This document shows positions 21,915 through 51,454 of a stretch of 64,000 nucleotides of DNA, one piece after another. The position numbers and the translations under genes are program-made. The first letter of the stretch is position 1; each line of letters opens with the position of its first letter. The notes beneath the pieces were generated by a model. It did not search any database. It saw only the letters and a list, made by a program, of their open reading frames with translations, and was not told where the DNA came from. The DNA comes from Sminthopsis crassicaudata (Eukaryota), in the NCBI RefSeq assembly GCF_048593235.1, contig NC_133622.1:204135198-204199197 (forward strand), given 5' to 3'.

Positions 21915-21924
21915 GGGACTTTCC
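21915..21924 (+). promoter_or_regulatory. Consensus NF-kB site in SAA-A intron 1
   Basis: Exact GGGACTTTCC, also present in the paralogous copy at 33707-33716. Confidence 0.55.
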
Positions 21925-25900: not shown

Positions 25901-26299
25901 CATCCAGATGGCCTAAAGAATGGGAAATCAAGTTGTGGATGTGCATGTTTACTTGTGATAAAAGACTATGGAGGCTGAATCCTTATCAAAAATGATCCAC
26001 AACCAGAGATTTAGTAGCTACTGGAATTCTTCTTCCTCAGGAAGATGAAGAACTAGACAAAGCCTCCCTCCCTCCCCCCAAGAGATTAAAAAGTGTACTG
26101 CAATCACTGCAATTAAGTATCAGAAATGGAAGGTGGAATAGTACAATCTAATATTTCATTAATATTAATATATGAAAAATATTGATATTTTCATATTTTT
26201 ATTTGGTATTGATAAAATGCAAGTTTCAATAAAATTGGGAAACCTGAAATTTGAAGAAAATATGCACTTTTTTTAAGAGTCAGGAAATCAAAGATTTTG

Positions 26300-26489
26300 G
26301 TTGTGCAATCTGGAAAGATGCCAGTGTGGGAATCTCCAAAATTACAGTGCTCTGTTTTTGAAGCTTGCTTCCTATTGGTTCCTTTGAATAATAGACTGAG
26401 ATAAATAACAGCCCTCTCTTGCACTAAAAAGCTGCAGTCTCCCCTCAGTTTTCCCACAGATCAGGAAGGAACAGAGAGAGAATACACAG
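26300..26489 (+). promoter_or_regulatory. SAA: SAA-B acute-phase-type promoter and non-coding exon 1
   Basis: C/EBP TTGTGCAAT 26301-26309, CTGGAA 26310-26315, kappaB GGGAATCTCC 26328-26337, GATAAATAACAGCC at about 26400 (similar to the human SAA TATA region as recalled), donor CAG|GTGAGT at 26489. Confidence 0.8.
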
Positions 26490-26969
26490 GTGAGTTCAAA
26501 TCTCAATGAGGAGTTTTCCTCTTCTATTCTAAATAGGTCCTTTTTTTTTTTTTTTTTTTTTTTGCAACTCAATTTAAAGATTCTCATGAGCAGGAGCCAT
26601 GTTTCATGATTCCTTAGCATTAGCAACAAAAAAGGCTCTCAATAAATGGCTCAGTGAGCCTCTGTTGGAGAGCACGAAATGGGGAACAAAGTCTAGTATC
26701 TTTAGCAATGACCCCAATAAACTAAGGGAAATTCGTCTCTCTCAGAGTTGGCTCATGGTGAGTGGTAAAAATGGGTGATGAGTGAGAAAAAAATTTTCCA
26801 TAAGGTGCTTTTAGATTTTTCAAATGCCAAATAATTGTAATTTAAATGAAAACAAAAGAAAATGAGAAAGTAGGCTCCTTGATCTTAAAATATTTGTCAC
26901 AGAGGAAGCAATGGGGTTTGCTGTCTCTCCCTGATCATCTCCTTCCTAAACTACAGCCCATCTGACCAG

Positions 26970-27072
26970 ATGAAGCTCATCACAGTCATCCTCCTCTTCT
27001 CTGTGGTCCTCTGTGTTCAGAGCCAAAATTGGCTTGTAGATTCTGCAAGATTTATGAAGGAGGCTGGTCAAG
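26970..27072 (+). CDS. SAA: SAA-B first coding exon; joined CDS 26970-27072, 28092-28230, 28379-28511, 124 aa, SAA3-like
   Basis: MKLITVILLFSVVLCVQSQNWLVDSARFMKEAGQ-G; donor G|GTAAGC. Confidence 0.95.
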
Positions 27073-27876
27073 GTAAGCACTGTCTGTAAAAAGATGAACG
27101 AGCCTTAATATTTATCAAGGTGCAAGGGAAATCCAGAGGAGTCGAGTTCATATTTTGCTTCTGAAACCACTGGCTCTGTGATCCTGGGCAAAGCACCTCA
27201 CCTTTGAGTGCCCAGACACCTCTCCAAGATGAAGGTCTAGAGCAGGTGCCAGTCCTTGTGAAGGAGAATTTCCCACCACAAGTTCCCCACTGGGAACAAA
27301 GCTGGACAATCCAAGCCAGAACTTTAGAGCTTCAGGGCTTGGTAGTATCAATATCTGAGTTTATCAGGTGGGCTCTGCTGCCCAGCTTAAGAAAGAGGAC
27401 CACCAGGATGGGCTAGTGTCCTACACAAAAGCAGGCCTCTTCTCTGAAAAAGACAAAGGTCAGGAAGGGAGAGAAGATGCCATGAAATACAGAACCTTGT
27501 ACCAGGGCAATGGTAGGGTTTGGGCAAATGGGGCCGAATGTAAATGCAAAGAGTCTAGTTCCGAACATCATCAGCCATACAGGTTATGATGAAGAGACCG
27601 ATCAAGCTACAGATGGATCCTAGTCAATATTTTTTGTTGTTTTTAATTAAGCTTTTAATTTTTAAGCTATACACATGGATAATTTTCAACCGGATCAATA
27701 TTTAAACTGGGGCAAAAATGACAAATTTTGAATTATATTTTCAGATTCAGTGTTAGAAATGGTAAGTTTTATTTTTTTAATAATGTAGGTAATCTGCTAT
27801 TTCAACATATTATTTCCATGAATACCATCAAACTAGGGAGAGGCAGCCAGGAACTAAGGAGAGCCCAGGAAGATCA

Positions 27877-28018
27877 ATTTTTTTCCGAGGCAATTGGGGT
27901 TAAGTGACTTGCCCAAGATCACACAACCAGGAATGTTAAGTGTCTGAGGCCAGATTTAAAGTGAGGTTCTCCTGACTTCAGGGCTGATGCTCTGTCCACT
28001 ATTCCAACTAGCTTCCCC
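27877..28018 (-). mobile_element. WSINE1-type SINE in SAA-B intron 2, absent from SAA-D
   Basis: TSD AAGATCA at 27870-27876 and 28019-28025; single copy at the empty site near 42862. Confidence 0.85.
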
Positions 28019-28091
28019 AAGATCAGTCTTTAAATCTGAATTTATATTATTGGTCCACCTTCCCTTTTGACTCAAAGAAGTCTTTTTCTAG

Positions 28092-28230
28092 GTGCTGGGG
28101 ACATGTGGAGAGCCTACCGGGACATGCGGGAAGCCAACTATAAAAATTCAGACAAATACTTCCATGCTCGTGGGAACTTTGATGCTGCCCGGAGAGGACC
28201 TGGTGGGGCTTGGGCAGCCAAAGTGATCAG
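28092..28230 (+). CDS. SAA: SAA-B middle coding exon (139 nt)
   Basis: [47 protein letters not shown]; canonical AG/GT. Confidence 0.97.
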
Positions 28231-28378
28231 GTAATCACTCCCCATGTCAGCTTGCCTAGAATTTGCAGATGAAATCCCAGAAAAACTCACTATGGGACGA
28301 TATTTCCTTCTCCTTTTCCATGTGTCCCCAAGTACAAAACCGCTTTCTTCATCTATTTTCTACCTTTCTGTTTTCCAG

Positions 28379-28511
28379 TGATGGCCGAGAATTCTTGCAG
28401 TTTGGCAGCAGTGGTGCAGACTCTGATGCAGACCAATTTGCAAATGAATGGGGCAGGAGTGGCAAAGACCCCAATTATTTCAGGCCCCCTGGTCTGGACC
28501 CCAAATACTGA
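28379..28511 (+). CDS. SAA: SAA-B last coding exon
   Basis: [43 protein letters not shown]; AATAAA at 28603-28608. Confidence 0.96.
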
Positions 28512-28634
28512 GATGATTTGTCCCCTCTTCTTTTTCCCTCCCGCCCTCCCTTCTGTGCCATCTGGCCTGTGCTCTCTCTGTGGAGACTTATGCTTTGTGC
28601 TCAATAAACATCCAAGCAAAGAATGAAGTGTTTC

Positions 28635-29095
28635 CTTCTACACCTAAAAGCCATATCAAATGACCTAACTCTACCATTGAACTCATTATCTTTCCCCTAA
28701 AGCCTCCATCACTTTCCACATTTCCAGTGACCGTCGGGGGCGCCGCCCCCTCGCACTCCCGCGTGCTCCCAGCTGAGGTGTTTCCCTTGGCATTTCGCCG
28801 TCCCTCACCCCCATACCCGATCTGACTGTTACCTCGGCGGCATCTCTCAGGAAGCCCCTCCTCCCCTCTGACACCGCCACCTTTAATACTCACAGCCCGG
28901 GGCCAGTCCTCCCGCTTTCCCGCCCGGACCGCGGCAGCCGCCCAGGGTCAGTGCGGCCGCCACGGCTCTGTCCTCGCTCTCATCCCTTCTCCATCCGCCG
29001 CCGAGGGGATTTTCTACAGCAAAGCTCCGAGCGTGTGGCGCTTTCTCCGTCCGCCCAGAGCTTGCTCCAAGAACAAGGAAATTCTCTGTTAGGGA
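28635..29095 (+). mobile_element. GC-enriched L2 relic paralogous to 44995-45480
   Basis: Colinear with the L2 downstream of SAA-D but with many A/T to G/C changes. Confidence 0.75.
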
Positions 29096-30110
29096 CGGAA
29101 GGGATGCGGAGAGTGACGGGCAGCAGGTAAGGGATGCGGAGAGTGACGGGCAGCAGGGAAGGGATGCGGAGAGTGACGGGCAGCAGGGAAGGGATGCGGA
29201 GAGTGACGGGCAGCAGGGAAGGGATGCGGAGAGTGACGGGCAGCAGGGAAGGGATGCGGAGAGTGACGGGCAGCAGGGAAGGGATGCGGAGAGTGACGGG
29301 CAGCAGGGAAGGGATGCAGAGAGTGACGGGCAGCAGGGAAGGGGCGCGCGGGGGTTCCCGGCGGTCCCCCATGGCCGGGTGACAGACTGGAGCCGGAGGG
29401 GCCTCAGGTCACTTCGCCCAATCCCCTTTTTCGCAGCAGTCCCGCGGTTAAAGGGCCTGAAACGGCGGCTGCGGTCCCTCGGACTCTCCGGGCGCCGGCG
29501 CCGTGTCCGGGGTCTCCTCGGCGCAGACCCCGGGCCGGGTCAGTGCTGTCCCCCAGCGGGGATCCGAGGTCCCATCGGGCCCGGCCTCCTCGGCTCCGGG
29601 CCGCCGCATGCAGAGGGAGCAGCAAATTCCTGCTCCTTCCGCCCCCTGACGCCCGGCTCCCACAGCGCCCCAAAGCCCGGGGCCCGCTGCTCCTTCCCGG
29701 GGCTGGAGACACGAGCTCTGCCGCGCTAAAGGGAGAGGCGAATCCGCTCCCTGCCCCCCCCCCCCCCGTTCCCGCCGTGTCCCCCCCACGCGGGCTCCCC
29801 TGAGACAGCGCTCGGAGCCCAGCCCGACGCCCAGCCACGGCTCTGCCCCCTCTCCGTCCGTGCCCAGGGCTCTCCTCTCCTGAGAAAAACTCCGTAACCG
29901 GAGGCATGGGGGGGAGGGGGTGTGTGTCTGCAGAGACTTCTCCGAGGGAAAGAGGCGTGTCCCGGGTTAGCCCCGCCCCTTTCCCGAATCTCCTCCCAGG
30001 TGGCTCGGTTCTAGGCAGTAAAGTAGCCGGAGCCTGAGTGTGGAGCCCGAGTAACCTGAGAGCATTAGAGGCGGCCCGGAGGTGTTCCGCTTAGAGAAAA
30101 CCCTTCCGAA
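28730..30110. promoter_or_regulatory. CpG island, gene not assigned
   Basis: Very GC- and CpG-rich. GC box CCCCGCCCC near 29971 and ETS-like CCGGA/TTCCG motifs near 30025-30110. No recognisable protein in any frame. Confidence 0.7.
29101..29340 (+). repeat. 30-bp minisatellite, 8 copies
   Basis: Unit GGGATGCGGAGAGTGACGGGCAGCAGGGAA; only copies 1 and 8 carry a single mismatch. Confidence 0.97.
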
Positions 30111-32597: not shown

Positions 32598-33330
32598 TAT
32601 ATCCCAAAGAGCTTATAGTAAAGAAGGGAAATGCACCCGTATGCACCAAAATGTTTGTGGCAGCCCTTTTTGTATGGCTGGAAACTGAAAAATGAATGGA
32701 TGCCCATTGATTGGAGAATGGTTGGGTAAATTGTGGTATATGAATGTTATGAAATATTATTGTTCTATAAGAAATGACCAGCAGGATGATTTCAGAAAGG
32801 CCTGGAGAGACTTACGTGAACTGATGCTGAGTGAAATGATCAGAACTAGGAGATCATTACACACAGCAACAACAATACTATATGAGGATCAATTCTGATG
32901 GATGTGGCCATCTTCAACACTGAGAAGATCCAAATGAATTCCAATTGATCTGTAATGAACAGAACCAGCTACATCCAGAGAAAGAACATTGGAAAATGAG
33001 TATGGACCAACATAACATTTCCACTCTTTACTGTTGGCTTGCATTTTTGTTTTTTTTCTTCTCAGGCTACTTTTACCTTCTTTCTAAATCTGATCTTTCT
33101 TGTGCAACAAGATAACTGTATGAACAGGTATACAAATATTGTATTTAACATATACTTTAACGTATTTAACATGTATGGGACTACCTGCCATCTGGGGGTT
33201 GGAGGGAAGGAAGGGAAAAATTGGAACAAAAAGTTTTGCAATTGTCAGTGCTAAAAAATTACCCATATATATATCTTGTAAATAAAGGTATAATAAAAAA
33301 TAATAAAATAATTTTTAAAAATAAAAAAAA
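32598..33330 (+). mobile_element. L1 3' fragment abutting the SAA-C breakpoint
   Basis: MNGCPLIGEWLGKLWYMN...YEDQF ORF2 C-terminus, 3'UTR and A-rich tail; no clear TSD. Confidence 0.85.
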
Positions 33331-33351
33331 ATATTTTTCAAGAGCCCTTAC

Positions 33352-34200
33352 CTAGGTGACACTGATCGAGGAAATCTAGTCCATTGAAACCAATTCTGGC
33401 TATTGACACTCAGGATCAGGGAGAAGAGAAAGAGGTTTGGGACAAACTTCATTGCTCCTGTCAGGCTGGAAGTAGGAAGCAGATGGATGCTCAGGGAGAC
33501 CTGCCAATGCTCATAAATCCCTTTTATTTTTGGTGGTTTTTTTCATATTCCTTTCTCCATATTTGTGAAGTCCTTTATTTTTTGAAGGAAGTGTTTACCA
33601 TCTCCAAAGTTATTTGGACTGACAGCAACCCCCCCATTGTAACTGGGTTCAATCAGCTTTAAGGAAAACCTTAAAGCCATGTGGAGAGGGAACCACTCAG
33701 CTTTTGGGGACTTTCCTCCCAATTTTGCCATTGTCCTGCAGAGGCCAGGCAGTCAGCAGGCAACTCTCAGGAGGTGATCTGTCAATCGATTCAATTCAAT
33801 TCAAAAAATATTTGACAGTGTGCTTGTTAGATGCCAGGTTCATCCCTATTCCTTAGAGATTAAAAAATACACAAAAAAGGAAGCAATCCCTGCTCTCAAG
33901 GTGATCAATAACCTTCTACAGATACATGAACAGTTTTGTTTAGTCCTAAAGCCACAGAAAAGAAATAAAAGACAAAGAACCTGGCCTATATGTGAGAAAG
34001 ACAGGAGCAAGAAGGGCAGAGCCTCAAAGAAACATAAGCTCACCTTAGGCTCCTTCTCCTTTCTCAGGTTGGTGGGGAGACTTAGCCCTGAGGCTTGCTG
34101 GGCATTGAACAGAGACTGATAGTTATAGAAATCTTTCACCATAGGGAGTGAATCTGTTGGCCAATTGCAGCCAAGGTAAGTTGGGGAATTCCCCCTTGAA
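33352..34200 (-). pseudogene. SAA: SAA-C: truncated paralog of SAA-A (promoter, exon 1, frameshifted first coding exon 33352-33452; later exons absent)
   Basis: MKFVPNLFLFSLILSVNSQNWFQWT, then a 2-nt deletion (ACTGTGGAT to ACTAGAT; exon 101 vs 103 nt). Exon 1 donor at 34044 and kappaB palindrome at 34183-34194. Homology to SAA-A stops at about 33340, next to an L1 tail. Confidence 0.88.
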
Positions 34201-35684
34201 ATTTTTTCCTGGTTGGTTATAGAAATAAGTACCCAAACCAAAAATCTATCATCTTCCTAGATTGCAAAATATTTAATTTGGGTACCTTAGGAGATTTTCC
34301 TGTTTGCACAGTTTCTTCAATGTTCAGTGCCATGAAAAGAAAAACATAGCAAATGAATGACACAGCACATCAAGCCAAAAAATCACAGACACAAAATGTC
34401 ATGGATGTACTGCAGTCTCTATCATTTATTATATCCAACCTAGAGGAGACATATATATATGCATATTTAGATAGATATAGATAGATAACTGTGAGTAATT
34501 TTGGGTTTTCTTAATTGACATTTTTATGTTTTTTTTTTTTTAAAGCACTTAATACAGGTCTTATTTGAGCTTCACAAAAATTTCCTGAGATACATTTTAT
34601 TTCCATTTTCTAGATAAAGGAACTCTGGCCTGGAGTGGTCAAACCCAGAGAAAGTTAAAAAGTTTACACAGAGCTTAACTGAATTAAACTTTATTTATTT
34701 TCTAATTTTCATTTATGCCTGACACTTGGCTCCTTCTATTCCTTTTGCATGCAAAATTCTTCCTTTCCACCTGTCTTCAAGAGGCAGCAGATCTGCCATT
34801 TCCTTCAATGAGGCCTTCTCTAATTATTCCATTCTAGAGGAGCCCTCCCAGTTCCCAAATCTTCCTAACTTGTCCTGAGGCAAACAACATGGTTGAGTCT
34901 GTGTGTGAGGTGAATATCAAGAACTCTCTCCATATGTAACTGAAGAAAGAAACATACATTTCTGCCTTTTTTTGCATTTAGACCACCTCAGTCCCGGTTA
35001 ACCAATTCTGTGTGGGAGAAGGGAAAGAAAGGTCCACAGAGATCCATGAAAATCATCGGGGGTCCTCTAGACTTGTCCCTCTCATGTTTCTTAGGTTGTG
35101 TAGGACTCATGTGGTACATTCCTTTCCTTCCATATCTCTCATGGTTCAGGTTCAGCTCCTGGACTGCAGCAGAGCTGGACAGAGAGTATGTGTCAGAGAT
35201 GATGTGTCAGAAAGCATCCCAAGCCCCACTCTGCCACAGAGAGAACCTCCCATCCATCATCAGGGTACACAATCTAGCAGTGAACATTCATGGCAACCGT
35301 TTATTGTTTCACAATGATGCAACTCTTCTGCCAATGAGATTGTCAATTCTGTGAATGTAGGAGATGTGTCTTATTCTTGTACTGTATCCCATAGAACTTA
35401 CCTCAGTGTTTTGTTTTGTTTTTTTTTTTTGGGGGGGGGAGGCTTCTACTAATATTATTCTTTTAAAAATAATACTAGCTTTTTCTTTTTCAAAATGCAT
35501 GCAAAATAGTTTTCAACTTTCACCCCTGCAAAACCCTGTGTTTCTAATTTTTCTCCCTCCCTTCAAAGGGGTTGGACTAATTCCCATCTAGTGCATAAGT
35601 AAGGATGTTTTCTCTCACTTCTTCCTCCCTCCTTCTTATCTATCTTTAGGGATTTTTTCCCTTAGAATTCTATTCCCTTTATAG

Positions 35685-36399
35685 GATATATATAGCTGGA
35701 AAAATAGTAGGTTTTTTTTTTCATATTCCTTTCTCCACATTTGTGAAGTCCATCCTTTTTTGAAAGAAGTGTTTAATATCTCCAAAGTTATCTGGACTGA
35801 GAGCAACCTTTGCATTTTAACCAGGTTCAATTTGCTCTAAGGAAAACCCCAAAGCAATGTGGAGATGGCATATTACTGTATTATTGTGCTAAATTTTATT
35901 TTGCTGTCCTATTAATTGTTATTACTGTGCTAAAAGAAATGATGAGCTCAAGGATCTTAGAAAAATGTGGAAGATATATAAAATAATAATTGTTTTCAAA
36001 ACAACTTTGAGTGAATAAGTTATTTTATCTATTATAAATACCCAAATTAACTATAAGAGACATATGAAGAAAGATGCCATCTGCTTCTAGTGAAAGAACT
36101 GACAAAACTTTTTTACATCCATACATTTATAGGTGTGTGTATATGTATATACATACATACAGGTATACATATTTATTGCCTAATGGTAGTCATTTCTAGG
36201 GTGAGTTAAGGAGGGTAGTCAAAAAAGAAGAAAAAAAGTAATTTCCATGATAATTTTGTTTTATATTTGAAGGAATAGCAAGTTATGCTTAATAGATTTG
36301 CAGATTTATATGCGATCACCTTTTTATGATATTATATTATGAGAAGCCTTGTTCTATTCCATAAATAAGTATTAATGTAAAAAATAAAACAAATTTAAA
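35685..36399 (+). mobile_element. TSD-bounded L1-type insertion whose 5' part resembles SAA-A/C intron 1
   Basis: 21-bp direct repeat AGAATTCTATTCCCTTTATAG at 35664-35684 and 36400-36420; A-rich tail; 35716-35870 aligns to 21750-21900 and 33535-33690. Confidence 0.65.
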
Positions 36400-38212
36400 A
36401 GAATTCTATTCCCTTTATAGCATCTTTTTCTGTGCAGATTTTCAAAATTCAATATACTTAAATGAAATGTTTTTCCCTTCAGTTTTGTTAAGTGTGATTA
36501 TAAATGCTATCCCAGTGTGAGGATGAGGTGAGGGGGAATCATTGAGATAAACTCCAAGGAGATTTTTCTTTATGCTTCATAGATTATATTCCACTTCCTC
36601 GCTTAGGAGTACATTTTAAAAACTATTCTCTCTCTGTGTATAGATATATACCTATCTATGTGTAGATCTATATCCATATTTACATACATACCTACATATG
36701 AGCTTCTAGTCCACCGAAATCAACCTCCAGAACGTCAGATCTTTTCCACACACTTTACAACCTATGTCTCCCTTAACTTGCACTCCTGAAGTTGCTTGTT
36801 TCAATCAGTTTTAGATATCACTTTTGCTTTACCTCTCTTAAATTATTAAATTTAACTGTCAAGGAACTGCCAAAATCTTCTTAAATCTATCTCTGTCAAT
36901 TAATGATTCACAGCTTATGTTCATTTACCAATGCACAAAGGATGCAGTGATCTGAACAGTTGGTAAAAATGTGATATAGCAGATAGAAAAGCCCAGATGC
37001 CAAAGGTGTTCCACTAGAAGCCATTCTCCAAGATACTCAATCAATAATAATTACTGCTGGGATCTGCTTACACAACTAGTTATGAATTCAACTAAATGTA
37101 CTATTGGCAAGTTCACATCCTTCCAGTTTATCCACAAGAAATGCATCAAAGATTTTGTCAAAGACTTTGCTAAAAAACTATATTTCCCTTATTTGCCAGC
37201 TGAAAAAAGAAAAGGAAATTAATCCAGCACATGACCTGTGCTTGATGAAGCCATGGTGAATGTTTCTACCTACTGCTTCTTCTGTTTGATGATCACGTGA
37301 TATACTTTCAATAATATTCTTTTATTAATTTAAGCTATCCTTTTGATAATGCATCCTGAAATTTTATCAGAAATTAAAGGGGTAATAAGTGCAAAAAGTT
37401 TAAGAAGCTCTGTCTACAGAATTCACTATCTTTTTTTGATGAACATGTGTACAAAATTTATCCCCCTTCAATACTCCTCTCTGTTACTTAAACTTTCAAA
37501 CCACCCCAACTCTCAGGTATTTCAGTATTCTAGGATATAGTACAAAAAGGCCATGTGATTTAAAGGCATTCTTTCAGTATCCCCTTATATATTAATTGGG
37601 CACCATTTCCACAGTAACCGTGTATTTTACGTCCTTTCTAGTCCAAAAATCATCATTCTCAACAGAAAACACAATGAAAACTTATCGAAATATCTTGTTT
37701 CCTCTCTGCTGTCAGTTGTCATTTCTGTTTTTCATATCCACCCCAAACTATTTCTGCATCTTTTCTTTGATTTTGTTTTTCTCAGAAGACTTTTTCTCAA
37801 AAGTAAAAAAGATTTCTTTCTGGATTGATCTTCTATTGTTCTGGAAACACCATAGTAAAATGGGCACTTGTGCTGTTTTAGAATGCTACAAGACCCCTAG
37901 TTGTCTTGAGAGATGAATAAATCCCTTAGCTATCATTTCAGATTGACTCCACAACTTTTTCTGGTAATTCTCATTACGTAATCTAAGACACATGTTATAT
38001 TTATCATAACATAAGATGTGCACCAGAATAGGTAACAACTCTGGCCTCTTACTTAACATTTTTAACTTAACTCATGGGGTTGGAAGTTTATTTTATTTCT
38101 TTTTTTAGTTCAGTTCAAAATGAACATGTAAAGTTTTCAGTTGAAAAAAATGTCCTCTGAGAGCAACTGATTTGCTTAGGTCACTCACTCCTTTCTAAAA
38201 AGGCCTGTAGAA

Positions 38213-38364
38213 GGGGCAGCTAGGTGGCGCAGTGGATAGAGCACCGGCCTCGAATTCAGGAGGACCTGAGTTCTAAATTGGCCTCAGACACTTAACACTT
38301 CCTAGCTGTGTGACCCTGGCAAGTCACTTAACCCCAGCCTCAGGGAAAATAAATAAATATAAAC
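38213..38364 (+). mobile_element. WSINE1-type SINE, cassette 2 only
   Basis: ggggcagctaggtggcgcagtggatagagc; imperfect TSD aaaaag(g/t)cctgt(a/t)gaa; empty site near 24375. Confidence 0.9.
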
Positions 38365-39763
38365 AAAAAGTCCTGTTGAAGACTCTTGGCTAACCTTTGG
38401 CCCTGCTAGAAAATGTAAATAAATAAATATTTAATTCCTTTCACTAAGACAGAAGACTAAAGGTTTATTGTGGCACTATTCCAGCTCTTGTCAAGGCTGG
38501 AGTTAGGGCATATGGGCCCAGGTGGTGATGAGAGAAAGCCCTGACAATTCCATTTCAGGAGAAGGTAAAGTCCAAGAAGGGTCAGCAGATCTCAATAATG
38601 GGAACCAAAGAAAGAGAAGATGGTGAATAAAAGACTGAAATCTGGGGACTTCATCCCTTGATATATCATTGTCAGAGGGAAAAATGCAAATGACAGACCA
38701 ATATTATTGATAATAACAATGCTGATTCACTCTCAGAATGAATAACCTATTCAAAAGTTACCCATTAAGATCAAATAGGGTTTAAACTCATAAAACAATG
38801 ACAGTTTAATATTGTCTGAGAAGATAATACAAATTATACAGAAATATCAATCATGAGTTGTTGTTTTTTTCTGTTTGCTTCCCTTGACCTGCAATAAATC
38901 TATTACTTTCCTGAGCCTGGTGAATCAGACCTTTGAAACAGATACTGGCAACAGAAATCTAGCTGTCTCAAATAATGAAGTTTACAGCTTATGTCCATCG
39001 AGGCAATAAACCAGAGAAGTGAAAATGTGTCCTCCCTGAATGTAGCCGGTACTGGCAAAAACAAAAACAAAAGCCTTTTCTTTAAAACATAGCATTTGGT
39101 TGTGGTTTTTACAAAATAAAATGATGTAGACATGTAAAGAGAGTTAGCCAATATGATCAAACCGATCTTTTTGAAACTGATGGTTAATTTTCTAAATATG
39201 AGGGAAGAGTGGAAGAGCGCTCGTCACCATTGAAATGCAAGTTTCAGGGGAACAATCCTGTGAGTTGTGTGTAAGTCAGGCAGAAAGAAGGGAGAGTGAT
39301 CTAGATGGACCCCAAAGTGCCAGGATTGGAGTGAGATTAAAGGCAGTGGCCAGATCATAGACTGGAAAGTGATAAGGGAATCCAGAGAGCATGGGAAGCT
39401 TTTTGAAGCTTTTCCACAAGTGGGAGAAATAAGAGGCAGCATTAGGGAATAAGGCCTTTGTTAAGAGGTATGGCCAAGCTCAGGAGCCAGGGATGGCCTT
39501 CCTTCCTTCCAGCGCTGTCTGAACTGGCTGCACCATTTTCCAATACATGCTCCAAATTAGAGCTGACACATACCTCTTCCCTTCCCAGTCCCACTACACC
39601 AGAGTTTCTATTGGCCACATCCCCTTTGGGAACTCAATGGGGCTACTGGGCCCTGGAGCCCATTATGAATTTGGTGCTGTTGATAACCACAACCACTCTC
39701 ATGACCAGGAGGAATCACAGAAAGCCATATGGAAGGCAGGGCATTCTATCTGGGTCTCCAAGG

Positions 39764-41600
39764 ATGTTCTAGACAGGGAGGAGGGAATTGTCAGAGATAG
39801 AAAAGGGAAGGTCCAGGGACTGGAATATGCCCATTGCATTTAGAGGGATGATGGACACATGCTGTGGATTGGGGAGCCCATCCAGATGGCCTAAAGAATG
39901 GGAAATCAAGTTGTGAGTGTGCACATTTACTTGAGATAGCAGACTATGGAGGCTGAATCCTTATCAAAAATGATCCACAACCAGAGATTTTTAAATAGTG
40001 ACTTCTAGCTCCTGGAACTCTTCTTCCTCAGGAAGATGAACTAGACAAAGCCTCCCTCCCTCCCCCCAAGAGATTAAACAGTGTACTGCAATCACTGCAA
40101 TTAAATATCAGAAATGGAAGGTGGAATAGTACAATCTAATATTTTATTAATATTAATATATGAAAAATGTTGATATTTTGATTCTGATGTGGTATTGATA
40201 AAAAGGAAGTTTCAATAAAATTGGGAAAACTGAAATTTGAAGAAGATATGCACATTTTTAAAAAAAGAGTCAAGAAATCCAAGATTTTGGTTGTGCAATC
40301 TGGAAAAGGTAAGAACATAGTGCAGCGTATAAAATTATTTCAATCATCATTTTGGGGAAAATGCCAGTGCATGAATCTCCAACTTACAATGCTTTGTTTT
40401 TGAACCTGGCTTCCTATTGGTTCCTTTGAATAATGGACTGGGATAAATAACAGCCTTCTCCTCCACTAAAAAGCTGCGTTCTTCCCTCAGCTTCCCTACA
40501 GATCAAGAAGGAACAGAGAGAGAACACACAGGTGCGTTCAAATCTCAATGAGGCATTTTCCTCTCCTATTGTCAATAGATCCTTTTTTTGCTTTTTTTGC
40601 AAATCGATTTCAAGATTCTCTTGAGTAGGAACTATGTTTCATGATTCCTTAGCATTAGCAACAGAAAAGGCTCTCAATAAATGGCATGTTCTAGACAGGG
40701 AGGAGGGAATTGTCAGAGATAGAAAAGGGAAGGTCCAGGGACTGGAATATGCCCATTGCATTTAGAGGGATGGTGGACACATGCTGTGGATTGTTGAGCC
40801 CATCCATATGGCCTAAAGAATGGGAAATCAAGTTGTGGGTGTGCATGTTTACTTGTGATAGCAGACTATGGAGGCTGAATCCTTGTCAAAAATGATCCAC
40901 AACCAGAGATTTTTAAATAGTGACTTCTAGCTCCTAGAACTCTTCTTCCTCAGGAAGATGAACTAGGCAAAGCCTCCCTCCCTCCCCCCAAGAGATTAAA
41001 AAGTGTACTACAATCACTGCAATTAAATATCATAAATGGAAGGTGGAATAGTACAATCTAATATTTTATTAATATTATTATATGAAAAATATTGATATTT
41101 TGATTTTGATTTGGTATTGATAAAAAGCAAGTTTCAATAAAATTTGGAAAACTGAAATTTGAAGAAGATATGCAAATTTTAAAACAGCCAAGAAATCCAA
41201 GATTTGGGTTGTGCAATCTGGAAAAGGTAAGAACATAGTGCAGCGTATAAAATTATTTCAATCATCATTTTGGGGAAAATGCCAGTGCATGAATCTCCAA
41301 CTTACAATGCTTTGTTTTTGAACCTGGCTTCCTATTGGTTCCTTTGAATAATGGACTGGGATAAATAACAGCCTTCTCCTCCACTAAAAAGCTGCAGTCT
41401 CCCCTCAGCTTCCCTACCGATCAAGAAGGAACAGAGAGAGAACACACAGGTGCGTTCAAATCTCACTGAGGAGTTTTCCTCTCCTATTGTCAATAGATTT
41501 TTTTTTTTTTTTTGCAATTCGATTTAATGATTCTCATGAGCAGGAACCATGTTTCATGATTCCTTAGCATTAGCAACAAAAAAAGACTTAACAAATGGCA
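39764..41600 (+). repeat. Tandem duplication (about 922-bp unit) of the SAA-D promoter and exon 1
   Basis: ATGTTCTAGACAGGGAG starts at 39764 and at 40686. Each unit has GATAAATAACAGCC (40442, 41360) and donor CAG|GTGCGT (40531, 41449). Confidence 0.9.
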
Positions 41601-41933
41601 TGCCAAATGATTCAGTGAGCTCTGTTGGTGAGCACAAAATGGGGAACAAAGTCTTGTGTGTTTAGCAATGACCCCAATAAATTAAGGGAAATGGGTCTTT
41701 TCTGTCTCAGAGTTGGCTCATGGTGAGTGGTAAAAATAGGTTTTGAGTGATAAAGAATTTTCTATAAAGTGTGTCTAGATCTTTCAAATGCCAAATAATT
41801 GTAATTTAAATGAAAACAAAAGAAAATGACAAAGTAAGCTCCTTGGTCTTAAAATATTTGTCACAGGGGCAGCGATGGGCTTTGCTGTCTCTCCCTGATC
41901 ATCTCCTTCCTAAACTACAGCCCATCTGACCAG

Positions 41934-42039
41934 ATGAAGCTCATCACAGTCATCCTCTTCTTCTCTGTGGTCCTCTTCGTTCAGAGCCACAATTGGTTTG
42001 ATGATAGTGCAAGTGTCATAAAGAAGCCTACAAGTGAAG
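41934..42039 (+). CDS. SAA-D (highly diverged SAA-B paralog) first coding exon; joined CDS 41934-42039, 42946-43075, 43749-43797, 94 aa
   Basis: MKLITVILFFSVVLFVQSHNWFDDSASVIKKPTSE-E; same acceptor as SAA-B; donor G|GTAAGG; +3 nt in frame. Confidence 0.85.
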
Positions 42040-42945
42040 GTAAGGTCTGTCCAGGATAAGATGGATTTCCTACAATTGGCCGTCCATAGATATAGTATGA
42101 ACGGAAGGCAGATTTCCATTTGAAATCAGTACTCCCTAAGAAATGTAAAAAGATAAATGAGCCTTAAGATTTATCAGGAAGGTACAAGGGAAATCCAGAG
42201 GAGTCGAGTTCATATTTTGCTTCTGAAACCACTGGCTCTGTGATCCTGGGCAAAGCACCTAACCTTTGAGTGCCCAAACACCTCTCCAAGATGAAGGTCT
42301 AGAGCAGCTCCCAGTCCTTGTGAAGGAGAATTTCCCACCACAAGTTCCCCACTGGGAACAAAGCTGGACAATCCAAGCCAGAACTTTAGAGCTTCAGGGC
42401 TTGGTAGTATCAATATCTGAGTTTATCAGGTGGGCTCTGCTGCCCAGCTTAAGAAAGAGGACCAACAGGATGGGCTAGTGTCCTACACAAAAGCAGGCCT
42501 CTTCTCTGAAAAAGACAAAGGTCAGGAAGGGAGAGAAGATGCCATGAAATACAGAACCTTGTACCAGGGCAATGGTAGGGTTTGGGCAAATGGGGCCGAA
42601 TGTAAATGCAAAGAGTCTAGTTCCGAACATCATCAGCCATACAGGTTATGATGAAGAGACAGATCAAGCTACAGATGGATCCTAGTCAATATTTTTTGTT
42701 GTTTTTAATTAATGTTTTTATTTTCAAAATTATCCATGTGTATAATTTTCAACCAGATCAATATTTAAACAATGGTAAGGTTTATTTTTTAAGTAATGTA
42801 GGCAACTTGCTCTTTCAACATACTATTTCTATCCGTACCATGGGACTAGAGAGAGCCCAGGAAGATCAGTCTTTAAATCTCGATTTACCTCACTGTTCCA
42901 CCTCCACTTTTGACTAACGGTAGTCTTTTTTTTTTTTTTTCCCAG

Positions 42946-43075
42946 AAATTAGGAAGGAGTTGAAAAGCAAGAATGAAGATGCTTTGGATATGTCAGAGGA
43001 ATATTTTGATGCTCCTTTTTACTATATTTCTAACCAGAAAAGACCTGGCGATTCTCAGGCATCCCAAATCCTCAG
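42946..43075 (+). CDS. SAA-D middle coding exon (130 nt, open)
   Basis: (E)IRKELKSKNEDALDMSEEYFDAPFYYISNQKRPGDSQASQIL(R); strong poly-T CCCAG acceptor; donor CAG|GTAATC as in SAA-B; phases 1 and 2 preserved. Confidence 0.8.
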
Positions 43076-43748
43076 GTAATCCATCCCTGTCTCAGTTCTC
43101 CTTAAATATACAGAAGATGAAACCCCAGGAAAACTCACCATGGGATATTTCCTCCTCCTTTTCTACGTATCCCCCAGTACAAAGTCCTACTAAACAACCC
43201 AACAAACTCCCCGATTGACACAGACAGCAGCAGGGGATGGGACATTGCTGTCAACTGAGCTGGAATCAGCAGTTCTGTCACTGACACCACAGGCAAAGTA
43301 AGGACGTAAGTCTTTGAGCTCCAGGTCTGAGAGTATGATGGAAGAGCATCTGCCACATGCTGCTCTCCACTCATTAATTATTACTCATGTTTCAATGGGC
43401 TGCAAGGTTGAGAAAGAACTTAGGGCTCATAATGTCTGCTGGAGGAAGGTAATGCAATCTTTTTATGTCCATTTTCCAGAAGAGCTCACTGAGACCCACA
43501 GGGCTTAAATGACTTGATAAGTAGCAAACATGACTCTCAGGTGCTAAAATCAAAATCTCAACCTTAGTCCAGTCCTTTCTCTTCAGGACCACAGAGATTG
43601 TATGGCAAGAAATGCTTTTGTCATGGTTGTCCATACCCCAACAGCCTGAAAGGCAGGGGAGAAGAGTCCTAAGACGGTTGGTTGCCCAGGTTAGGAATTT
43701 GCAATTTAACTTGTTGCTTCCTCTATTTTCTACTTTCCTATTTTTCAG

Positions 43749-43797
43749 GGATGGAAAATCCAGCCACAAGAGAGGGAAAGGCTCTAAAGCAAACTAA
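43749..43797 (+). CDS. SAA-D last coding exon with early stop
   Basis: Acceptor ttttcag|G, then DGKSSHKRGKGSKAN*. TAA replaces the CAA of DQFANEW, and the decayed SAA tail follows. AATAAA at 43971-43976. Confidence 0.75.
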
Positions 43798-44292
43798 TTT
43801 GCAAATGAATGGGGCAGGAGGGCAAGGACCCCAATCATTTCTGGCCCGACGCTCTGGACCCCAAATCCTGAGATGACTTGTTCCCTCCTCTTTTCCCCTC
43901 CCTGCCCTCCCTTCTGTGCCACCTGCATGGAGCATCTGCTCTCTCTGTTTTAGCCTCATGCTTTGTGCTCAATAAATATCCAAGCAAAGAATGAAGCTGT
44001 TTCTTCTTCGTGTGACAAACTTGACAATTGTCGGGAAGCAAAGAGAGCAACGGGGGAGGACTGGAACAATTGTGAGAATTCTAGAAACCAAGTTTGCTTC
44101 AAGAATGAGTCTGTGGTGTGACTCTTGTGGGATTGGCTGAAACAGAATATTGATGGAAATCATAAAAAGTGAGGAATTGAATCTTCCTTAGAGATAGGAA
44201 GGTGAAAGAGCATAATGGAATTGGGTTCTTCAGAATCACAATGAAAAATCTGGATTCGAGATTTTATAGGAAAATACTAGAAATACACAGAA

Positions 44293-44440
44293 TGGGACAG
44301 CAAGATGCCACAGTGGATAGAGCACAGACCCTGGAGTCAGGAGGCCCTGAGTTCAGATGTGTCCTCAGACACTTAACACTTACTAAGTGTGTGAGCCTGG
44401 GCAAGTCTCTTATCCCCAATTGCTTTGCCAAAAAAACCCA
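44293..44440 (+). mobile_element. WSINE1-type SINE
   Basis: cagtggatagagcacagaccctggagtcaggagg... plus A tail. Confidence 0.8.
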
Positions 44441-44599
44441 AAACCCAAACAGAACAGAACCCTATAATATTTCTAACTTCCCCTTAACCCCAGAAAGAGA
44501 AGAAATTTCATAGTGATCTATTTTTTGATTATTCTATTTCCTGTACTATTACTCTGGGCACTTTCTATTTTATAACTATTCTTTCATATGTCAATTGCC

Positions 44600-45740
44600 A
44601 GTTTTATTTACTGGAAAGGGAGGAAGAAATAGTTCCTGATAATTGCTGTTATCTCTTCATCATTGGTCAGGAATTCACTTTTTTCTCACTTTTGACATTA
44701 TTGATCACACTTGATATTCTCCTCTGTCTAGGTTTCTCAGGACACCATTCCCTCTCAGTTCTCTTTCTATCTCTCAGTCCTTCTCTCCTCAGTCTGTTTT
44801 GCTGGATCCTCTTCCCATGGGTGTCCCGCAGGCCCCACATCTGTTCTGTGCTCTCTTTTCTTCTCCCTTGAGACTACTTCATTTGATGATCTTATAGGGT
44901 CCTTTAAATTTAATGATCATTCCTATGCTGATGATTCTCAAATCTACCTTTCCTGCCCCAATCTCTCTCCAATCTCCCATCTCTGGCTACCCTTTAACAC
45001 CTAAAAGTGATATCCTAAATGACCTAATTTTAAAACTGAACTCACTATCTGTCCCATCAAACCCTGCATCCTTTCAACATTTCCTGTGACCATCAGGGGC
45101 CCTGTCCCCCCCCTCTGCCTGCACTCCCCTGTGCTCCCAGCTGAGGTGTTTACCTTGGCATTTCACCGTCCCTCATCCCCCATATCCGATCTGTTACAAA
45201 AGCCTATTGATTGTTATCTGCAACATCTCTCAGGTACGCCCCTTCTCTCCTCTGACACTGCCATCTTTAAATACTTTATAGACTGGCGCCAGTCTTTATC
45301 ATTTCACGTCTGGACCACTGCAATCGCCGATGGTCAGTCTGTCCGCCTCAACTCTACCTTTACTTCAATCCATTCTCCATTTGGCCACCGAAGTGATTTT
45401 CTAAAGTAAAGGTCCGAATATGTGGCCACTTTCTCCGTCAGCCCCAGAGTTTGCCTCCAAGAACAGAGGAAATTCTCTGGTATTCAAAGCCCCACCTTAC
45501 CTAGCCCAGTCATACCTTTGCCAGTTTTGTTACACTTTACTTTGTCACATATTCTTCCATTCAGTGTCACTTTCTGCTCTTCTTCAAAAAAAGCTATTCT
45601 ATCTCCTGACTCTGGTCATTTTCTTTGTCCCCTATGCCTGGAATGAGTTCCCTCCTCATCTCTTCCTAGTTTCCTTCAAATCACAATTAAAATCCCACTT
45701 TCCATATGAACTCATTCCCAATCCCTCTTAATTCTAATTA
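44600..45740 (+). mobile_element. L2 relic
   Basis: L2-like motifs (tatgctgatgattctcaaatctacc, aaaactgaactcactatc, ctggaccactgcaat). Confidence 0.75.
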
Positions 45741-46741: not shown

Positions 46742-47864
46742 AATTCTAGTTACCTTTTTCTCTTGATGATTTACTATTTATTCTGTCTGCAGTTTGTTTG
46801 TATAAATGTCCTTGCTTCTTCTTTACTCTATTAGATTATGGTCTCCTCCATTTTTTTCTCTTCTTTTTCCTTAATGCCTGACGTTTCTATTTGTCACAAT
46901 GTAAGACATGTTTCTGGCCCTAGCTATGTATTTATATAACAGATGGCACAGATATATGCTCTCCCCCAAAATCATTTTGTATCCATTTTGTATTTTTAAG
47001 TTTAGAGCCACGGAATGGTCAGGTAGAAGTGAGATTAATATTCAAGTATTGTTCAATCTTCTCCACTGTTCCTTTCTTATTGTATAAAGTCTTCTTTGTG
47101 CATTCCATTTAAGATAATTCTCTCCATTTTTTTTTTCCCAAAGCACAACTCATCCAACAGTCCATTTTTCTTTTGAAATCAAACATTCTCATGTCCTCTA
47201 ATTAAACTCCCTCTTTGAGTGCTGGTCACAATCAACTTCTAAGGGACTATATCATCTACTAATATGAGAATATAAATTTTTAGGTACTTATAATATCTCT
47301 TATGTTTCCTTTTTATTCTTCATTTGACTTCTATGTTTTTATTTCAAATTTTCTACTCAAAATTGCTCTTTTCATCAAGAATGCTTGGAAGTCCTCTAAT
47401 TCAACTATAATTCATTTTCTCCCTCTAGGATTTTATTCAGTTTTGATATAGGTTATTTTTTATTGCAATCTTAGATCCTTTCCTTTCTGGAATACTTTAT
47501 TCCAAACTCTCTGCTTCTTGATAATTATGATTGTTAAAATGTATGTGATTCCAATTGTGGCCCCTCAGTACTTGAATTTTTTTTTTTCTGTTTGAAGTTT
47601 TTTTTTTCCCTTGAACTGTAAGTTCTGAATTTTTGTTATAATATGGTTTTCGGGCTCCTTTTTTTATTTCATGGTTTTCATGTAGGCCAAAATGATTCTT
47701 AAATCTTCTCTCTTCGATTTGTTTTCCAGATCACTTGTTTTTCTAAGACATATTTCATACTTTGTTTTATTTTCCCCAGTCTGATTTTCTTGATTAAAAT
47801 TCAGTCTAGTGCATTTTCTTTTCTTTTTTTTCTGGTTATATATGTACATTAATTTTTCAAACAC

Positions 47865-48520
47865 ATATTTCTTTTTTATTAAAGCTTTTTATTTTCAAAA
47901 CATATACAAGGATACTTTTTCAATATTAACCCTTGCAAAACCTTGCGTTTCAATTTTTCTCCCCCTTTCTCCCATCCCCTTCCCTAGATGGCAAGTAATT
48001 CAATATATGTTAAACATGTTAAAATATATGTTAAATCCAATATAAACATACATATTTATACAATTATCTTGCCACACAAGAAAAATCAGATCAAAAAGGG
48101 AAAAAATGAAAAAGAAAATAAAATGCAAACAAACAATAAAAAGAATGAAAATGTTATGTTGTGATCTACATTCAGTTCCAACTCTGGATGTAGATAGCTC
48201 TCTTCATCACTAGATCATTGGAACTGGCTTGGACCGTCTCATTGTTGAAAAGAGTCATATCCATCAGAATTGATCATGGTATAATCTTGTTGTTGCCATG
48301 TGCAATGATCTCCTAGTTCTGCTTACTTCACTCAGCATCAGTTCATGTAAGTCTCTCCAGGCCTTTCTGAAATCATCCTGCTGATAGTTTCTTATAGAAC
48401 AATAATATTCCATAACATTCATATACAATAACTTATTCAGCCATTCCCCAACTGATAGGTATCCACTCAATTTCCAGTTTCTTGCCACTAAAAAAAGGGC
48501 TGCCACAAACATTTTTGTAC
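47865..48520 (-). mobile_element. L1 3' fragment, antisense
   Basis: ORF 48264-48512 MFVAALFLVARNWK...YHDQF plus 3'UTR. Confidence 0.85.
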
Positions 48521-49329
48521 ATATAAATACACATTTCTTTATGAATCATATTGGGAGAGAAAAATTAAAACAAAAGGGAAAAATCACAAGAGAAAAAAAG
48601 GAAAAATTTTTAAAAGTGAACATAGAATGTGTTGATTTACATTCAATCTCCATAGTTCTCTCTCTGGATACAAAAAGAGTTTTATATTCAAAGTTTATTC
48701 TGGTGCTTTTTTAGCTCTTTTTTTTTAGGAGCTACATTAGACTAGCTAGAATCTAATGCTTTTACTCATTCTGCCATTTTGACTTTATCACCTAAAAATC
48801 TAATTGGGGAAAAAAATGAAACAAAAGGAAAAGCTCCAGAAATGTTTGTAATAATGAGGAAAAAACCTAAGCAATTCCAAAGATATGCCAATTGATAGAT
48901 CCTTTCAAAAGTAACTCAGAATTATGTATGGAGAACACTGAAGAAAAAAAATTTCAGCTAGAATTTAAGAATTACCAAAATGTGAGCACTTTAACAACAG
49001 AAAGTTTACATGGAATCTCAGTAAAGAATAACTTCAAATTCTAATCTGCAAGTCATATATAAAAAGGCAATAGAGACTAGATGTGATTTTAATAATGTAG
49101 GAAAACCCTAGTTGGGCAAACTCTTTAACAATTCAGGTTGTCACCTTCTGGGCAACTTGCTATTTTAAAGGAGTACTAGAACACTGACAGATTAATTAAC
49201 AATGATCAGACTAGAACCTTCATTTTCTGGGCTTTAGTACTATATGTTAGTATACTGGGCCATGGTGGCTCTAAACTTATAAATACAAAATGGATACAAA
49301 ATGATAGAATAAGGGGTTTGTTGTGTCTA

Positions 49330-49545
49330 ATTTTCTGGGACCTCATTTGGGGTTTTCTTGGCAAAGACACTGGAGTAGTTTGCCACTTACTTCTTCAGCT
49401 CATTTTACAGATGAGGAAACTGAGGCAGACAGGGTTAAGTGACTAACCCAGGGTCACACAACTCTTAAGCGGCTCAGCCCAGATTTAAACTCAGGAAGAG
49501 TTTTTTTGTTGTCAAGCCAGGGTCAAGCTATTCATCATACCACCT
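49330..49545 (-). mobile_element. MAR1-like CORE SINE
   Basis: ttttcttggcaaagacactggagtagtttgccac..agatgaggaaactgaggca. Confidence 0.75.
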
Positions 49546-51454
49546 AGCTACTCCAGAATAAGGGTTACATAAGATATAAAGAAAGGGGGGGGGGAAGTAG
49601 AATATAGATAAAGGAAAGATGTAACCCACCTGGTTCCCAGTGAGGGATTGGGGAAATTCAGGAGTCCAAAGATTCTGAATGGAGCCAGGGCCAACACAGT
49701 GGACAGGGGAATATAGATTTGATTATCAACTTCTGAAAAAGAGAGTTGGAAAGCAAATAGATATGCATGGCAGCAGTTCAGATATCCAATTCTGGTATTA
49801 TTTTTTGGCAAAGGCAGGGTTTGGTAGAGTTCAGGGGCCAGGCTGATTTTAGAAGGGCAAGGCTCTTTGGAGGTGCTCCCCTGGAGGTCAGCACAGCCCT
49901 TCACCAGGACTCATTTCAGTTTGTTTGAGTAATATCCATAAAGTGCTTTGCCAACCTTAAATCCTTGCATAATTGCTATCTATTAGTATTCTTAAATAAC
50001 TTTTTTTTTTTTTTTTTAGAGAGTGAGCAGGGGGGAGAAGGAAAGGACCAGGAACATCTTTGACCAGTGAATAGTCTGAAGAGGGAGGAATATTAGAATA
50101 GATACCCAGGGCATTTGGTGTTGGAAGGTTTATTCAGATGACAATTGAAGACCCTAAGAATGATGGACAGAAATTATGTAGAGAAAAAAAAATTAGTCTT
50201 TCAGGGAACAATGTTATTTTTTAAACTTTTTTTCTGAATAGTATTTTATTTTTCCAATTACATGTAAAGATAGTTTTCAACATTCATTTTTGTAAAACTT
50301 TGTGATCTACAACAAGAATAGGTGATGAATAACTATGAAATAATTTGTTCTTTTCAATGGTTCAGTGATCCAAAGCAATCCCAATAGACTTTGGATAGGA
50401 AATGCCATCTGCATCCAGACAAAGAACTATGGAGATTGAACAACAATCTATATTTACACAATATATGCAATACAAGCTATATTTACTTCTTTTTTCTGTT
50501 TTTTTTTTCTCTCCCATGGTTTTTTCCCTTTTGCTCTGATTTTTCTCTCCAATATAATTCATAAAGCAATGTATATTTTTTATTGATTTTATAATTATAA
50601 ATTTTTGACAGTACATGTGCATGATTAATTTTTTTATAACATTATCCCTGGTATTCATTTTTCCAAATTTTCCCCTCCCTCCCTCTACTCCCTCCCCTAG
50701 ATGACAGGCAATCCCATACATATTAAATGTGTTACAGTATAACCTAAATACAATATATGTGTGTAAATCCAATTTTCTTGTTGCACGTTAAGAATTGGAT
50801 TCCATAAAGCAATTATATTAAGTATAAATATAAAGTATATTAAGAAGAAATAAATTTAGAAAAGACTTTTGTGTTCAAAATTTTTCTCCCTCCCTTCTTC
50901 TCCCTTCTTTACCTTCCTAAGACACTAAAGAAAAAAAGCAATCTGATACAGATTGTACATGTACAATCATTTTAAACATATTTCCATATTTGTCATGTTG
51001 TGAAAGAGAAAAACCAAAGGAAAGAAAAAAGAAAACAAAAAGGTAAAAATTGCATGCATTGATTTGCATTCAATCTCCATATCTCTGAATGTAGATGGCA
51101 TTTTCCAACCAAGTCTATTGGAACTGTCTGGGATCACTGTATTGCTGAGAAGAGCTATTAATGATATAACTGATCATCACATAATCTTGAAGTAGCAATG
51201 TTATTGAAAAAATGCAGAGAGTAACCAGATTGTGGGCAGATATCTAACAGCAATGATGGAGAGATTATAATATGGAGGCATTTCATGAAACCCAGAGTGT
51301 AGAGGCCATCAAGGAATGGTAGAGAAATGTTCAAGAAGTGTCTGTGTGGAACAAGGAATATGCACATCATGTTGCAAGGGAAGTGTCATCCTCAGAGAGG
51401 AGTAGGGCTTTATTCAGGTAATGTTGATTGAAATTGCTGTTCAATTTGCTCAAG

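Follow-up and report, generated by a model that had tools for sequence, protein, structure and literature searches.

Structure of the SAA-D locus

[quoted passage not shown] One of its members, SAA-D, is a duplicate that has kept its secretion signal, splice sites and polyadenylation signal, and in which the part coding for the mature protein has changed several-fold more than the non-coding sequence around it. An earlier note on this DNA, made from the letters alone, had described SAA-D as an SAA duplicate rewritten into a new secreted protein of 94 amino acids (aa). All coordinates given below are positions in the window, and all SAA-D features lie on the plus strand.

Splicing of 41934-42039, 42946-43075 and the segment from 43749 onward reproduced the 94-aa open reading frame (ORF) of that note exactly, with an identical translation. 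The splice junctions (GAAG/GTAAGG, T16CCCAG/AAATTA, CTCAG/GTAATC and TTTTTCAG/GGATGG) are all canonical, and the AATAAA signal is intact at 43971-43976, both as claimed. In addition, an acceptor (CTACAG/CCCATCTGACCAGATG) was found before the ATG exon, which starts at 41921. Because this acceptor and a non-coding first exon lie upstream, the three exons recognised earlier correspond to exons 2-4 of a four-exon gene; the exons themselves stand, and their count had to be revised. In the model mRNA no AUG precedes the 94-aa ORF, which is the first reading frame of the transcript and also the longest.

Exon 2 (41921-42039) comprises 13 nt of 5' untranslated region (UTR), the ATG at 41934, the signal-peptide codons (41934-41987) and 17 mature codons plus one base. 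Exon 3 (42946-43075), the middle exon of the earlier note, is preceded by 16 T before its acceptor and represents the most diverged 130 nt of the duplicated cassette described below. The start of the last exon (43749-43797) supplies the final 16 codons and the stop, a TAA at 43795-43797 where all canonical copies read CAA. Beyond it lie a relic of the ancestral codons for the C-terminus, which are no longer translated (43798-43873), and the 3'UTR (43874-43995), which holds the AATAAA and ends at a predicted poly(A) site. Within the first intron of the coding region, a tract at 42144-42770 shows 96.6% identity to the same intron of SAA-B and is read as a recent gene conversion with that gene. 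Furthermore, approximately 520 nt of the last intron (43191-43713) are unique, with no counterpart in SAA-B, in the B and D genes of the Tasmanian devil (hereafter the devil) or in the related gene of Antechinus. A short interspersed nuclear element (SINE)-like sequence of about 170 nt, kept upstream of the middle exon in SAA-B (27846-28018), devil B, devil D and the Antechinus gene, is missing from SAA-D at 42857/42858. Since a global MAFFT alignment misplaced the middle exon owing to the absence of this element, the divergence of SAA-D by region was obtained from piecewise alignments.

Upstream, a tandem duplication (39764-40688 and 40686-41602, approximately 920 bp, 94.4% identity) doubles the promoter and the first exon. 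In the distal promoter copy (40291-40451), a C/EBP site TTGTGCAAT occupies 40291-40299; an insertion of 53 nt follows, then a mutated NF-kB site ATGAATCTCC (40371-40380) and a TATA-like box GATAAATAAC (40442-40451). The proximal copy (41209-41369) repeats this arrangement, with the C/EBP site at 41209-41217, the 53-nt insertion, the mutated NF-kB site at 41289-41298 and the TATA-like box at 41360-41369. The non-coding first exon lies at 40477-40531 in the distal copy, its start inferred some 25-30 nt past the TATA-like box, and at 41395-41449 in the proximal one, its start likewise inferred; the donor ACACAG/GTGCGT follows 40531 and 41449, respectively. The TATA-like box, the C/EBP site and the short first exon match the corresponding SAA-B elements (26301-26489). 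In SAA-B, devil B and devil D, an NF-kB site GGGAATCTCC stands beside the C/EBP site without the insertion, whereas in both SAA-D copies GGGAATCTCC has become ATGAATCTCC (core GGG to ATG) and 53 nt separate the two sites. As both copies share the insertion and the NF-kB loss, these changes are older than the promoter duplication. Acute-phase induction of SAA genes is known to depend on a C/EBP and an NF-kB site lying side by side. Upstream of its TATA box SAA-D retains the C/EBP site and lacks the adjacent pair, and from the loss of the NF-kB site it is predicted to be without classical acute-phase induction.

The predicted product

The predicted signal peptide of SAA-D, MKLITVILFFSVVLFVQS/HN (the slash marking cleavage), equals that of SAA-B at 16 of 18 residues. 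The mature chain that would follow has 76 residues. Acidic residues number 13 and basic ones 14; the front of the chain is acidic and its tail basic (+5), the grand average of hydropathy is -1.33, and there are four dibasic pairs. Beyond the signal little of the parental protein remains. Only 7 of the last 28 residues of the middle exon equal SAA-B, the same weak match that had been reported from the letters, and the two core motifs of the family, FHARGN(Y/F)DAA and GPGGAWAA, are replaced by FDAPFYYISN and RPGDSQAS, the first of these being the conserved motif described earlier as destroyed. Two S-x-E sites (mature residues 16 and 34) and the EEYFD context are likewise present as sequence. As targets of FAM20C and of tyrosine sulfation they remain putative, being short motifs in an acidic, serine-rich chain.

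No match to the SAA profile of Pfam (PF00277) was obtained at E<=10 for either the 94-aa product or the middle-exon peptide; the same profile scored 154 bits for SAA-B, 158 for devil D and 90.8 for the Antechinus gene. A word search with the 94-aa product gave no candidate among annotated or assembled proteins, and since it also missed SAA-B, it says little about distant relatives. In a feature search of the ESM Atlas the best score was 0.62, which is meaningless, and no look-alike was retrieved. With respect to the four-helix bundle of the SAA family, AlphaFold2, run on SAA-D without an alignment, returned a mean predicted local distance difference test (pLDDT) of 63.5 and a predicted template modelling score of 0.25, with a pLDDT of 86-89 at the signal helix. 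The product is most likely a secreted, highly charged chain of 76 residues that is probably disordered for the most part.

Cluster context and positional orthology

The parent-type paralogue, SAA-B (26301-28622, plus strand), carries its C/EBP, NF-kB and TATA elements at 26301-26309, 26328-26337 and 26400-26409, and its coding exons (26970-27072, 28092-28230 and 28379-28511) encode a protein 100% identical to XP_074132135 of S. crassicaudata. A cassette that begins inside SAA-A (minus strand) and runs through the intergenic region to SAA-B (21530-29091) is repeated at 33334-45482, with a patchy non-coding divergence of 8.7% between the two copies. Both cassettes are also present in the devil, where the A-B pair with the gene P0003 lies on L001 and the second cassette on L003, 19 kb further on and collinear with dunnart 32598-35824 and 46742-50000. 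Since the devil has the same two cassettes, the duplication is older than the dunnart-devil split.

The position of SAA-D is occupied in the devil by P0121 (XP_031797477), an intact, canonical SAA of 124 aa, the devil D gene of the profile search above. This positional orthology is a matter of observation, as are the gene anatomy and the rate and frame statistics presented below. With an intact canonical orthologue in the devil, the rewriting is assigned to the dunnart lineage. The descent of SAA-D from SAA is evident from its cluster position, exon structure and intron phases. Compared with the canonical genes SAA-B and P0121, it also shares the four exons, the TATA box, the C/EBP site, the 3'UTR and the poly(A) signal. 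It differs in that the mature protein is only about 25% identical in the alignable part and 30 parental codons shorter, with the two core motifs, the NF-kB site and the PF00277 match lost.

Introns included, the devil B (L001:9640-11800) and devil D (L003:9640-11800) genes share 98% identity over 2.1 kb. Despite the older duplication, this identity points to concerted evolution in the devil, unlike in the dunnart; as homogenised copies, the two devil genes reflect the state of D at the split only indirectly.

Divergence along the gene

Compared with devil D, SAA-D differs by 9.8% in the 300 nt upstream and by 13% in the signal peptide. The values then rise to 28.6% in the mature part of the ATG exon, 41.5% in the middle exon and 30.6% in the pre-stop part of the last exon, and fall again to 9.6% in the post-stop relic, 6.1% in the 3'UTR and 13.0% in 1.4 kb of downstream sequence. 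Overall, the mature-coding part is 36% diverged vs 10-13% for non-coding sequence, and the control comparison of SAA-B with devil B gave 7-12% in the same exons. The fast zone thus begins at the signal-peptide cleavage site and stops at the stop codon. Both boundaries are supported statistically, with p=0.004 for the change point between pre-stop and post-stop sequence and p=0.003 (against SAA-B) for that between the signal and mature parts of the same exon.

The comparison with SAA-B gives the same picture: 3 of 54 nt (5.6%) differ in the signal-coding part, in agreement with the near-identity of the signal peptides reported before, vs 28.6% in the mature part of the ATG exon and 44.6% in the middle exon. 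When a 130-nt window was moved over the duplicated cassette (approximately 6.9 kb), all top windows fell on the SAA-D middle exon (45-49%), while the highest non-coding window reached 33% and the median was 10%. Polarisation with SAA-A assigned 74 changes to the lineage of D and 11 to that of B. The ratio of transitions to transversions was 0.70 in the mature-coding part of SAA-D and 1.59 in the non-coding cassette.

Reading frame and selection on the translated sequence

Before the SAA-D stop, every insertion or deletion relative to SAA-B is a multiple of three. The first coding exon has gained 3 nt (+3); the middle exon shows -9, for which a shifted acceptor and a deletion within the exon are equally good readings, and the last exon a further -9. 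The in-frame pattern (+3, -9, -9) described earlier is therefore retained, the last -9 being composed of -3 and -6. In the non-coding cassette only 18% of the indels have a length divisible by three, which puts the chance probability of three to four in-frame events at 0.006-0.001. When 91 substitutions were placed at random in the 75 aligned codons according to the observed spectrum, a stop-free outcome occurred in 1.4% of the trials, and the mean was 4 stops. Relative to the parental frame a disabling change is present, namely CAA to TAA at parental codon 100, together with a 1-nt deletion downstream (between 43820 and 43821), which is the sole frameshift and lies after the TAA, as the earlier note had it. 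The scattered stops and frameshifts of a typical pseudogene are absent: the frame before the TAA is stop-free (p=0.014), and all indels in it are in frame.

From a devil-like ancestor, SAA-D accumulated 0.60 nonsynonymous (dN) and 0.27 synonymous (dS) substitutions per site, giving a ratio (omega) of 2.1-2.2. Over the same span SAA-B has a dS of 0.26 and a dN of 0.056. The near-equality of the two dS values indicates that silent sites in SAA-D received no extra mutation, and replacement changes are about ten times those of SAA-B. Nonsynonymous change in SAA-D also exceeds non-coding divergence (p=2e-18). A branch codon model written by the authors estimated omega at 2.1-2.2 for SAA-D and 0.34 for the background. 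Fisher's test on nonsynonymous vs synonymous counts gave p=0.024, and the likelihood-ratio test against an omega of 1 on the SAA-D branch only p=0.09-0.13, with about 44 synonymous sites. The dN/dS comparison proposed in the earlier note thus returned a supportive point estimate and Fisher's test, and a likelihood-ratio test that falls short. In the same way, its preference for positive selection and neofunctionalisation over decay holds for the misfit of rates and frame with decay; an omega above 1 stands as a point estimate.

Two simpler sources of the divergence were considered and rejected. The middle exon might be an old stratum that merely escaped conversion, an account that fails as the whole explanation because no non-coding 130-nt window exceeds 33%, because dS equals that of SAA-B and because the boundaries track the translated region. 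Decay from GC to AT, or CpG loss, was also discarded: changes affect about 50% of G and C sites and about 30% of A and T sites, and the parental middle exon has only 4 CpGs, which could not account for an excess of 3-5-fold.

Three observations lead to the rejection of plain decay: the acceleration follows the translated mature peptide, silent sites are not accelerated, and the frame was kept (chance approximately 1e-4 to 1e-5). The pattern is best explained by selection on a translated product, whether past or present. The competing account is that of an ordinary unprocessed pseudogene whose exons were scrambled without selection and whose open frame is luck. Candidate causes would be a mutational burst, error-prone repair near a deletion or insertion, escape from conversion, or conversion from a diverged donor. 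Such a history would fit the premature TAA relative to the parent and the frameshift behind it, the almost equal number of differences at the three codon positions (32/27/32) and the non-significant test for omega above 1. It would also fit the position of the middle exon, flanked by a deletion of 170 nt and an insertion of 520 nt, and the raised divergence (27%) of the 77 nt upstream of that exon, from which part of the signal could be regional. Gene conversion, moreover, is clearly active in these clusters, as seen in the 96.6% intron tract and the 98% identity of devil B and D. However, the three islands of divergence are bounded by the signal-cleavage codon and the stop codon and not by structural breakpoints. 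The chance of no stop (0.014) multiplied by that of in-frame indels (0.001-0.006) gives the approximately 1e-4 to 1e-5 quoted above, and the equal dS of SAA-D and SAA-B gives no sign of a raised silent mutation rate. Neutral evolution to 0.5-0.6 substitutions per site would take a divergence several-fold larger than that between dunnart and devil (about 0.13), and the middle-exon peptide has no look-alike elsewhere in the window or among annotated proteins that could point to a donor. Scrambling without selection is accordingly regarded as quite unlikely.

Expression data

Of the 31-mers of 41900-44000, 18.5% are common to SAA-B, all of them in the first intron. The locus-specific set was taken from 42946-43976, which shares no 31-mer with SAA-B; the exons alone would give a share of about 0.30. 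Locus-specific 31-mers were present at 0.54, 0.52, 0.27 and 0.25 in four runs of one study, whose label as RNA is a guess, and at 0.00 in 15 runs from five other studies. From the shares in the four positive runs, and subject to that label, the SAA-D locus is probably transcribed in some samples. Intron words were present in two of the four, and coverage in run X3 was much better over the 3' half of the locus than over the 5' half.

These data bear on two further accounts. In the first, SAA-D was once selected and translated and has since lost its expression, so that it would now be a young pseudogene or a bystander transcript. This would agree with the absence of locus-specific words from 15 of 19 runs, with the NF-kB core changed from GGG to ATG and 53 nt inserted in both promoter copies, and with a product missing from the annotated dunnart proteins; the sequence statistics would reflect past selection and not present function. 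A dying gene is harder to reconcile with 94 codons free of any disabling change, with intact splice sites, TATA box, C/EBP site and poly(A) signal, and with locus words in at least four runs. The two promoter copies also differ by 5.6%, so the promoter changes are old and the frame has stayed open since. On balance, loss of expression after past selection is considered unlikely.

In the second account, any role of SAA-D would lie in its RNA or its transcription, for instance in regulating neighbouring SAA genes, with the ORF untranslated. Intron words in the runs would suit such a role, as would the better coverage of the 3' half in run X3, which could mean a transcript start away from the predicted promoter. 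An RNA role nevertheless leaves unexplained why the fast zone matches the translated mature peptide and why the frame and the signal peptide were kept, and it is judged improbable.

Proposed origin and functional reading

The following course of events is proposed for SAA-D. A cassette comprising the 5' part of SAA-A, the intergenic region and SAA-B would have been duplicated before the dunnart-devil split. In the dunnart, the second B-type copy would then have gained the CAA to TAA stop, removing the last quarter of the protein, lost its NF-kB site and acquired the 53-nt insertion between the C/EBP and NF-kB sites, and its promoter and first exon would have been duplicated in tandem. Afterwards codons 19-94, the translated and secreted part, would have changed amino acids several-fold faster than neutral sequence. 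Under selection, the signal for secretion, the open frame, every splice site and the poly(A) signal would have been preserved. The product would enter the secretory pathway through the SAA signal peptide, and the gene would no longer be an NF-kB-driven acute-phase gene.

That SAA-D is at present a functional, fast-evolving secreted peptide is put at slightly better than even. A number of results weigh against it. Every step from transcription at the predicted promoter through splicing and translation to secretion and function is deduced, and in the expression data the 15 negative runs, the intron words in two of four positive runs from a single study and the guessed RNA label of those runs count on the same side. 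The loss of the NF-kB site is equally expected of a dying gene, while the raised flank of the middle exon, the even codon positions and the likelihood-ratio test speak as set out above. No homologue was recovered: phmmer with the middle-exon peptide gave 0 matches against 1.84 billion representatives, and the 94-aa protein is absent from the proteins annotated from the dunnart genome. So far the dunnart is the single species with the rewritten sequence, devil D being canonical. Finally, the single-sequence AlphaFold2 model was confident only at the signal helix, with no fold beyond.

SAA proteins are remarkably conserved across vertebrates (PMC5832974). Given this conservation and the retained secretion and splicing signals, a mature chain invisible to the family profile is unexpected. 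Provided that SAA-D is expressed and translated, it would document a passage from a folded acute-phase apolipoprotein to an orphan secreted peptide within one marsupial subfamily. For this passage SAA-B would be the evident parent, devil D the orthologue left unchanged and a gene of Antechinus possibly an intermediate. With all three available, the order of truncation, NF-kB loss and acceleration would be directly testable. The locus also calls for caution in annotation, as genes of this kind are likely to be called pseudogenes because of their premature stop.

Comparison with known systems

The possible intermediate is a gene of Antechinus flavipes annotated as 'serum amyloid A protein-like' (P0117, XP_051822052, L005:10001-11596), which sits at the B position and not at D; locus L005 does not extend to the D position of Antechinus. 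The gene is intact and encodes 121 aa, with an omega of 1.2-1.9, in-frame deletions only and an NF-kB site reading GAGAATCTCC (GGG to GAG). Compared with devil B, 54 of 309 mature-coding sites differ, distributed 16/23/15 over the codon positions. It has in common with SAA-D its origin as a B-type duplicate in a dasyurid, the signal peptide, rapid change of the amino-acid sequence and an impaired NF-kB site; unlike SAA-D, it is full length, recognised by the Pfam SAA profile and far less diverged. The two genes share 8-9 derived bases vs about 4 expected by chance, which may reflect either common ancestry moved by conversion or parallel change. A tentative generalisation, and one considered rather doubtful, is that dasyurids repeatedly free a B-type SAA duplicate from NF-kB control for adaptive evolution of the mature chain, with the orphan secreted peptide SAA-D as the endpoint and the Antechinus gene as an intermediate. 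On that reading a new peptide gene would have been caught arising from one of the most conserved vertebrate proteins, its SAA ancestry still apparent only in the signal peptide, introns and UTRs.

Among SAA genes with a premature stop, human SAA3P offers a parallel. It is reported to be still transcribed and correctly spliced in mammary epithelial cells, and its ORF encodes a 60-aa precursor including an 18-aa signal peptide (PMC5832974, citing Larson et al. 2003). It is also described as disabled by a single nucleotide change, and its predicted peptide as never detected (PMC5832974). SAA-D resembles it as a truncated SAA copy that may still be spliced. SAA3P is not reported to be hyperdiverged, whereas SAA-D is accelerated several-fold only in its translated part and keeps its frame for 94 codons.

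A conserved signal peptide in front of a fast-evolving mature part is familiar from conotoxins, amphibian skin peptides and mammalian defensins, which form multi-member families with documented expression and activity. SAA-D would resemble them in the conserved signal, UTRs and introns around a fast mature region. It differs in being one gene in one species, known here from sequence, and in having a folded apolipoprotein as its parent and not a peptide precursor. In the literature on marsupial and dasyurid SAA nothing was found on such duplicates, and the dunnart transcriptome paper had no mention of SAA.

Other features of the SAA cluster

The second cassette also contains a fragment, 'SAA-C' (33334-33452, minus strand), which consists only of the ATG exon of an A-type gene; the rest has been lost beside L1-like sequence at 32598-33229. 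The devil keeps a complete gene at this position (L002:17961-20845), with an annotated 89-aa product.

Downstream of dunnart SAA-B (28640-30100), the sequence is GC-rich (approximately 60%) and contains a direct repeat with an offset of 60 bp (29097-29283 and 29157-29343, 98.9% identity). This region aligns to the devil at only 69-71%, while for the sequence beyond SAA-D the figure is 84% with both devil cassettes, which indicates that the B flank was altered and not the D flank.

In the first cassette, exon 2 of the head-to-head gene SAA-A (20801-20939) and the corresponding exon of SAA-B (28092-28230) are about 93% identical, and the ATG exons differ much more. The dS between SAA-A and SAA-B is 0.90 in the signal part and 0.34 in the mature part, a pattern that suggests exon-limited gene conversion between these two functional genes.

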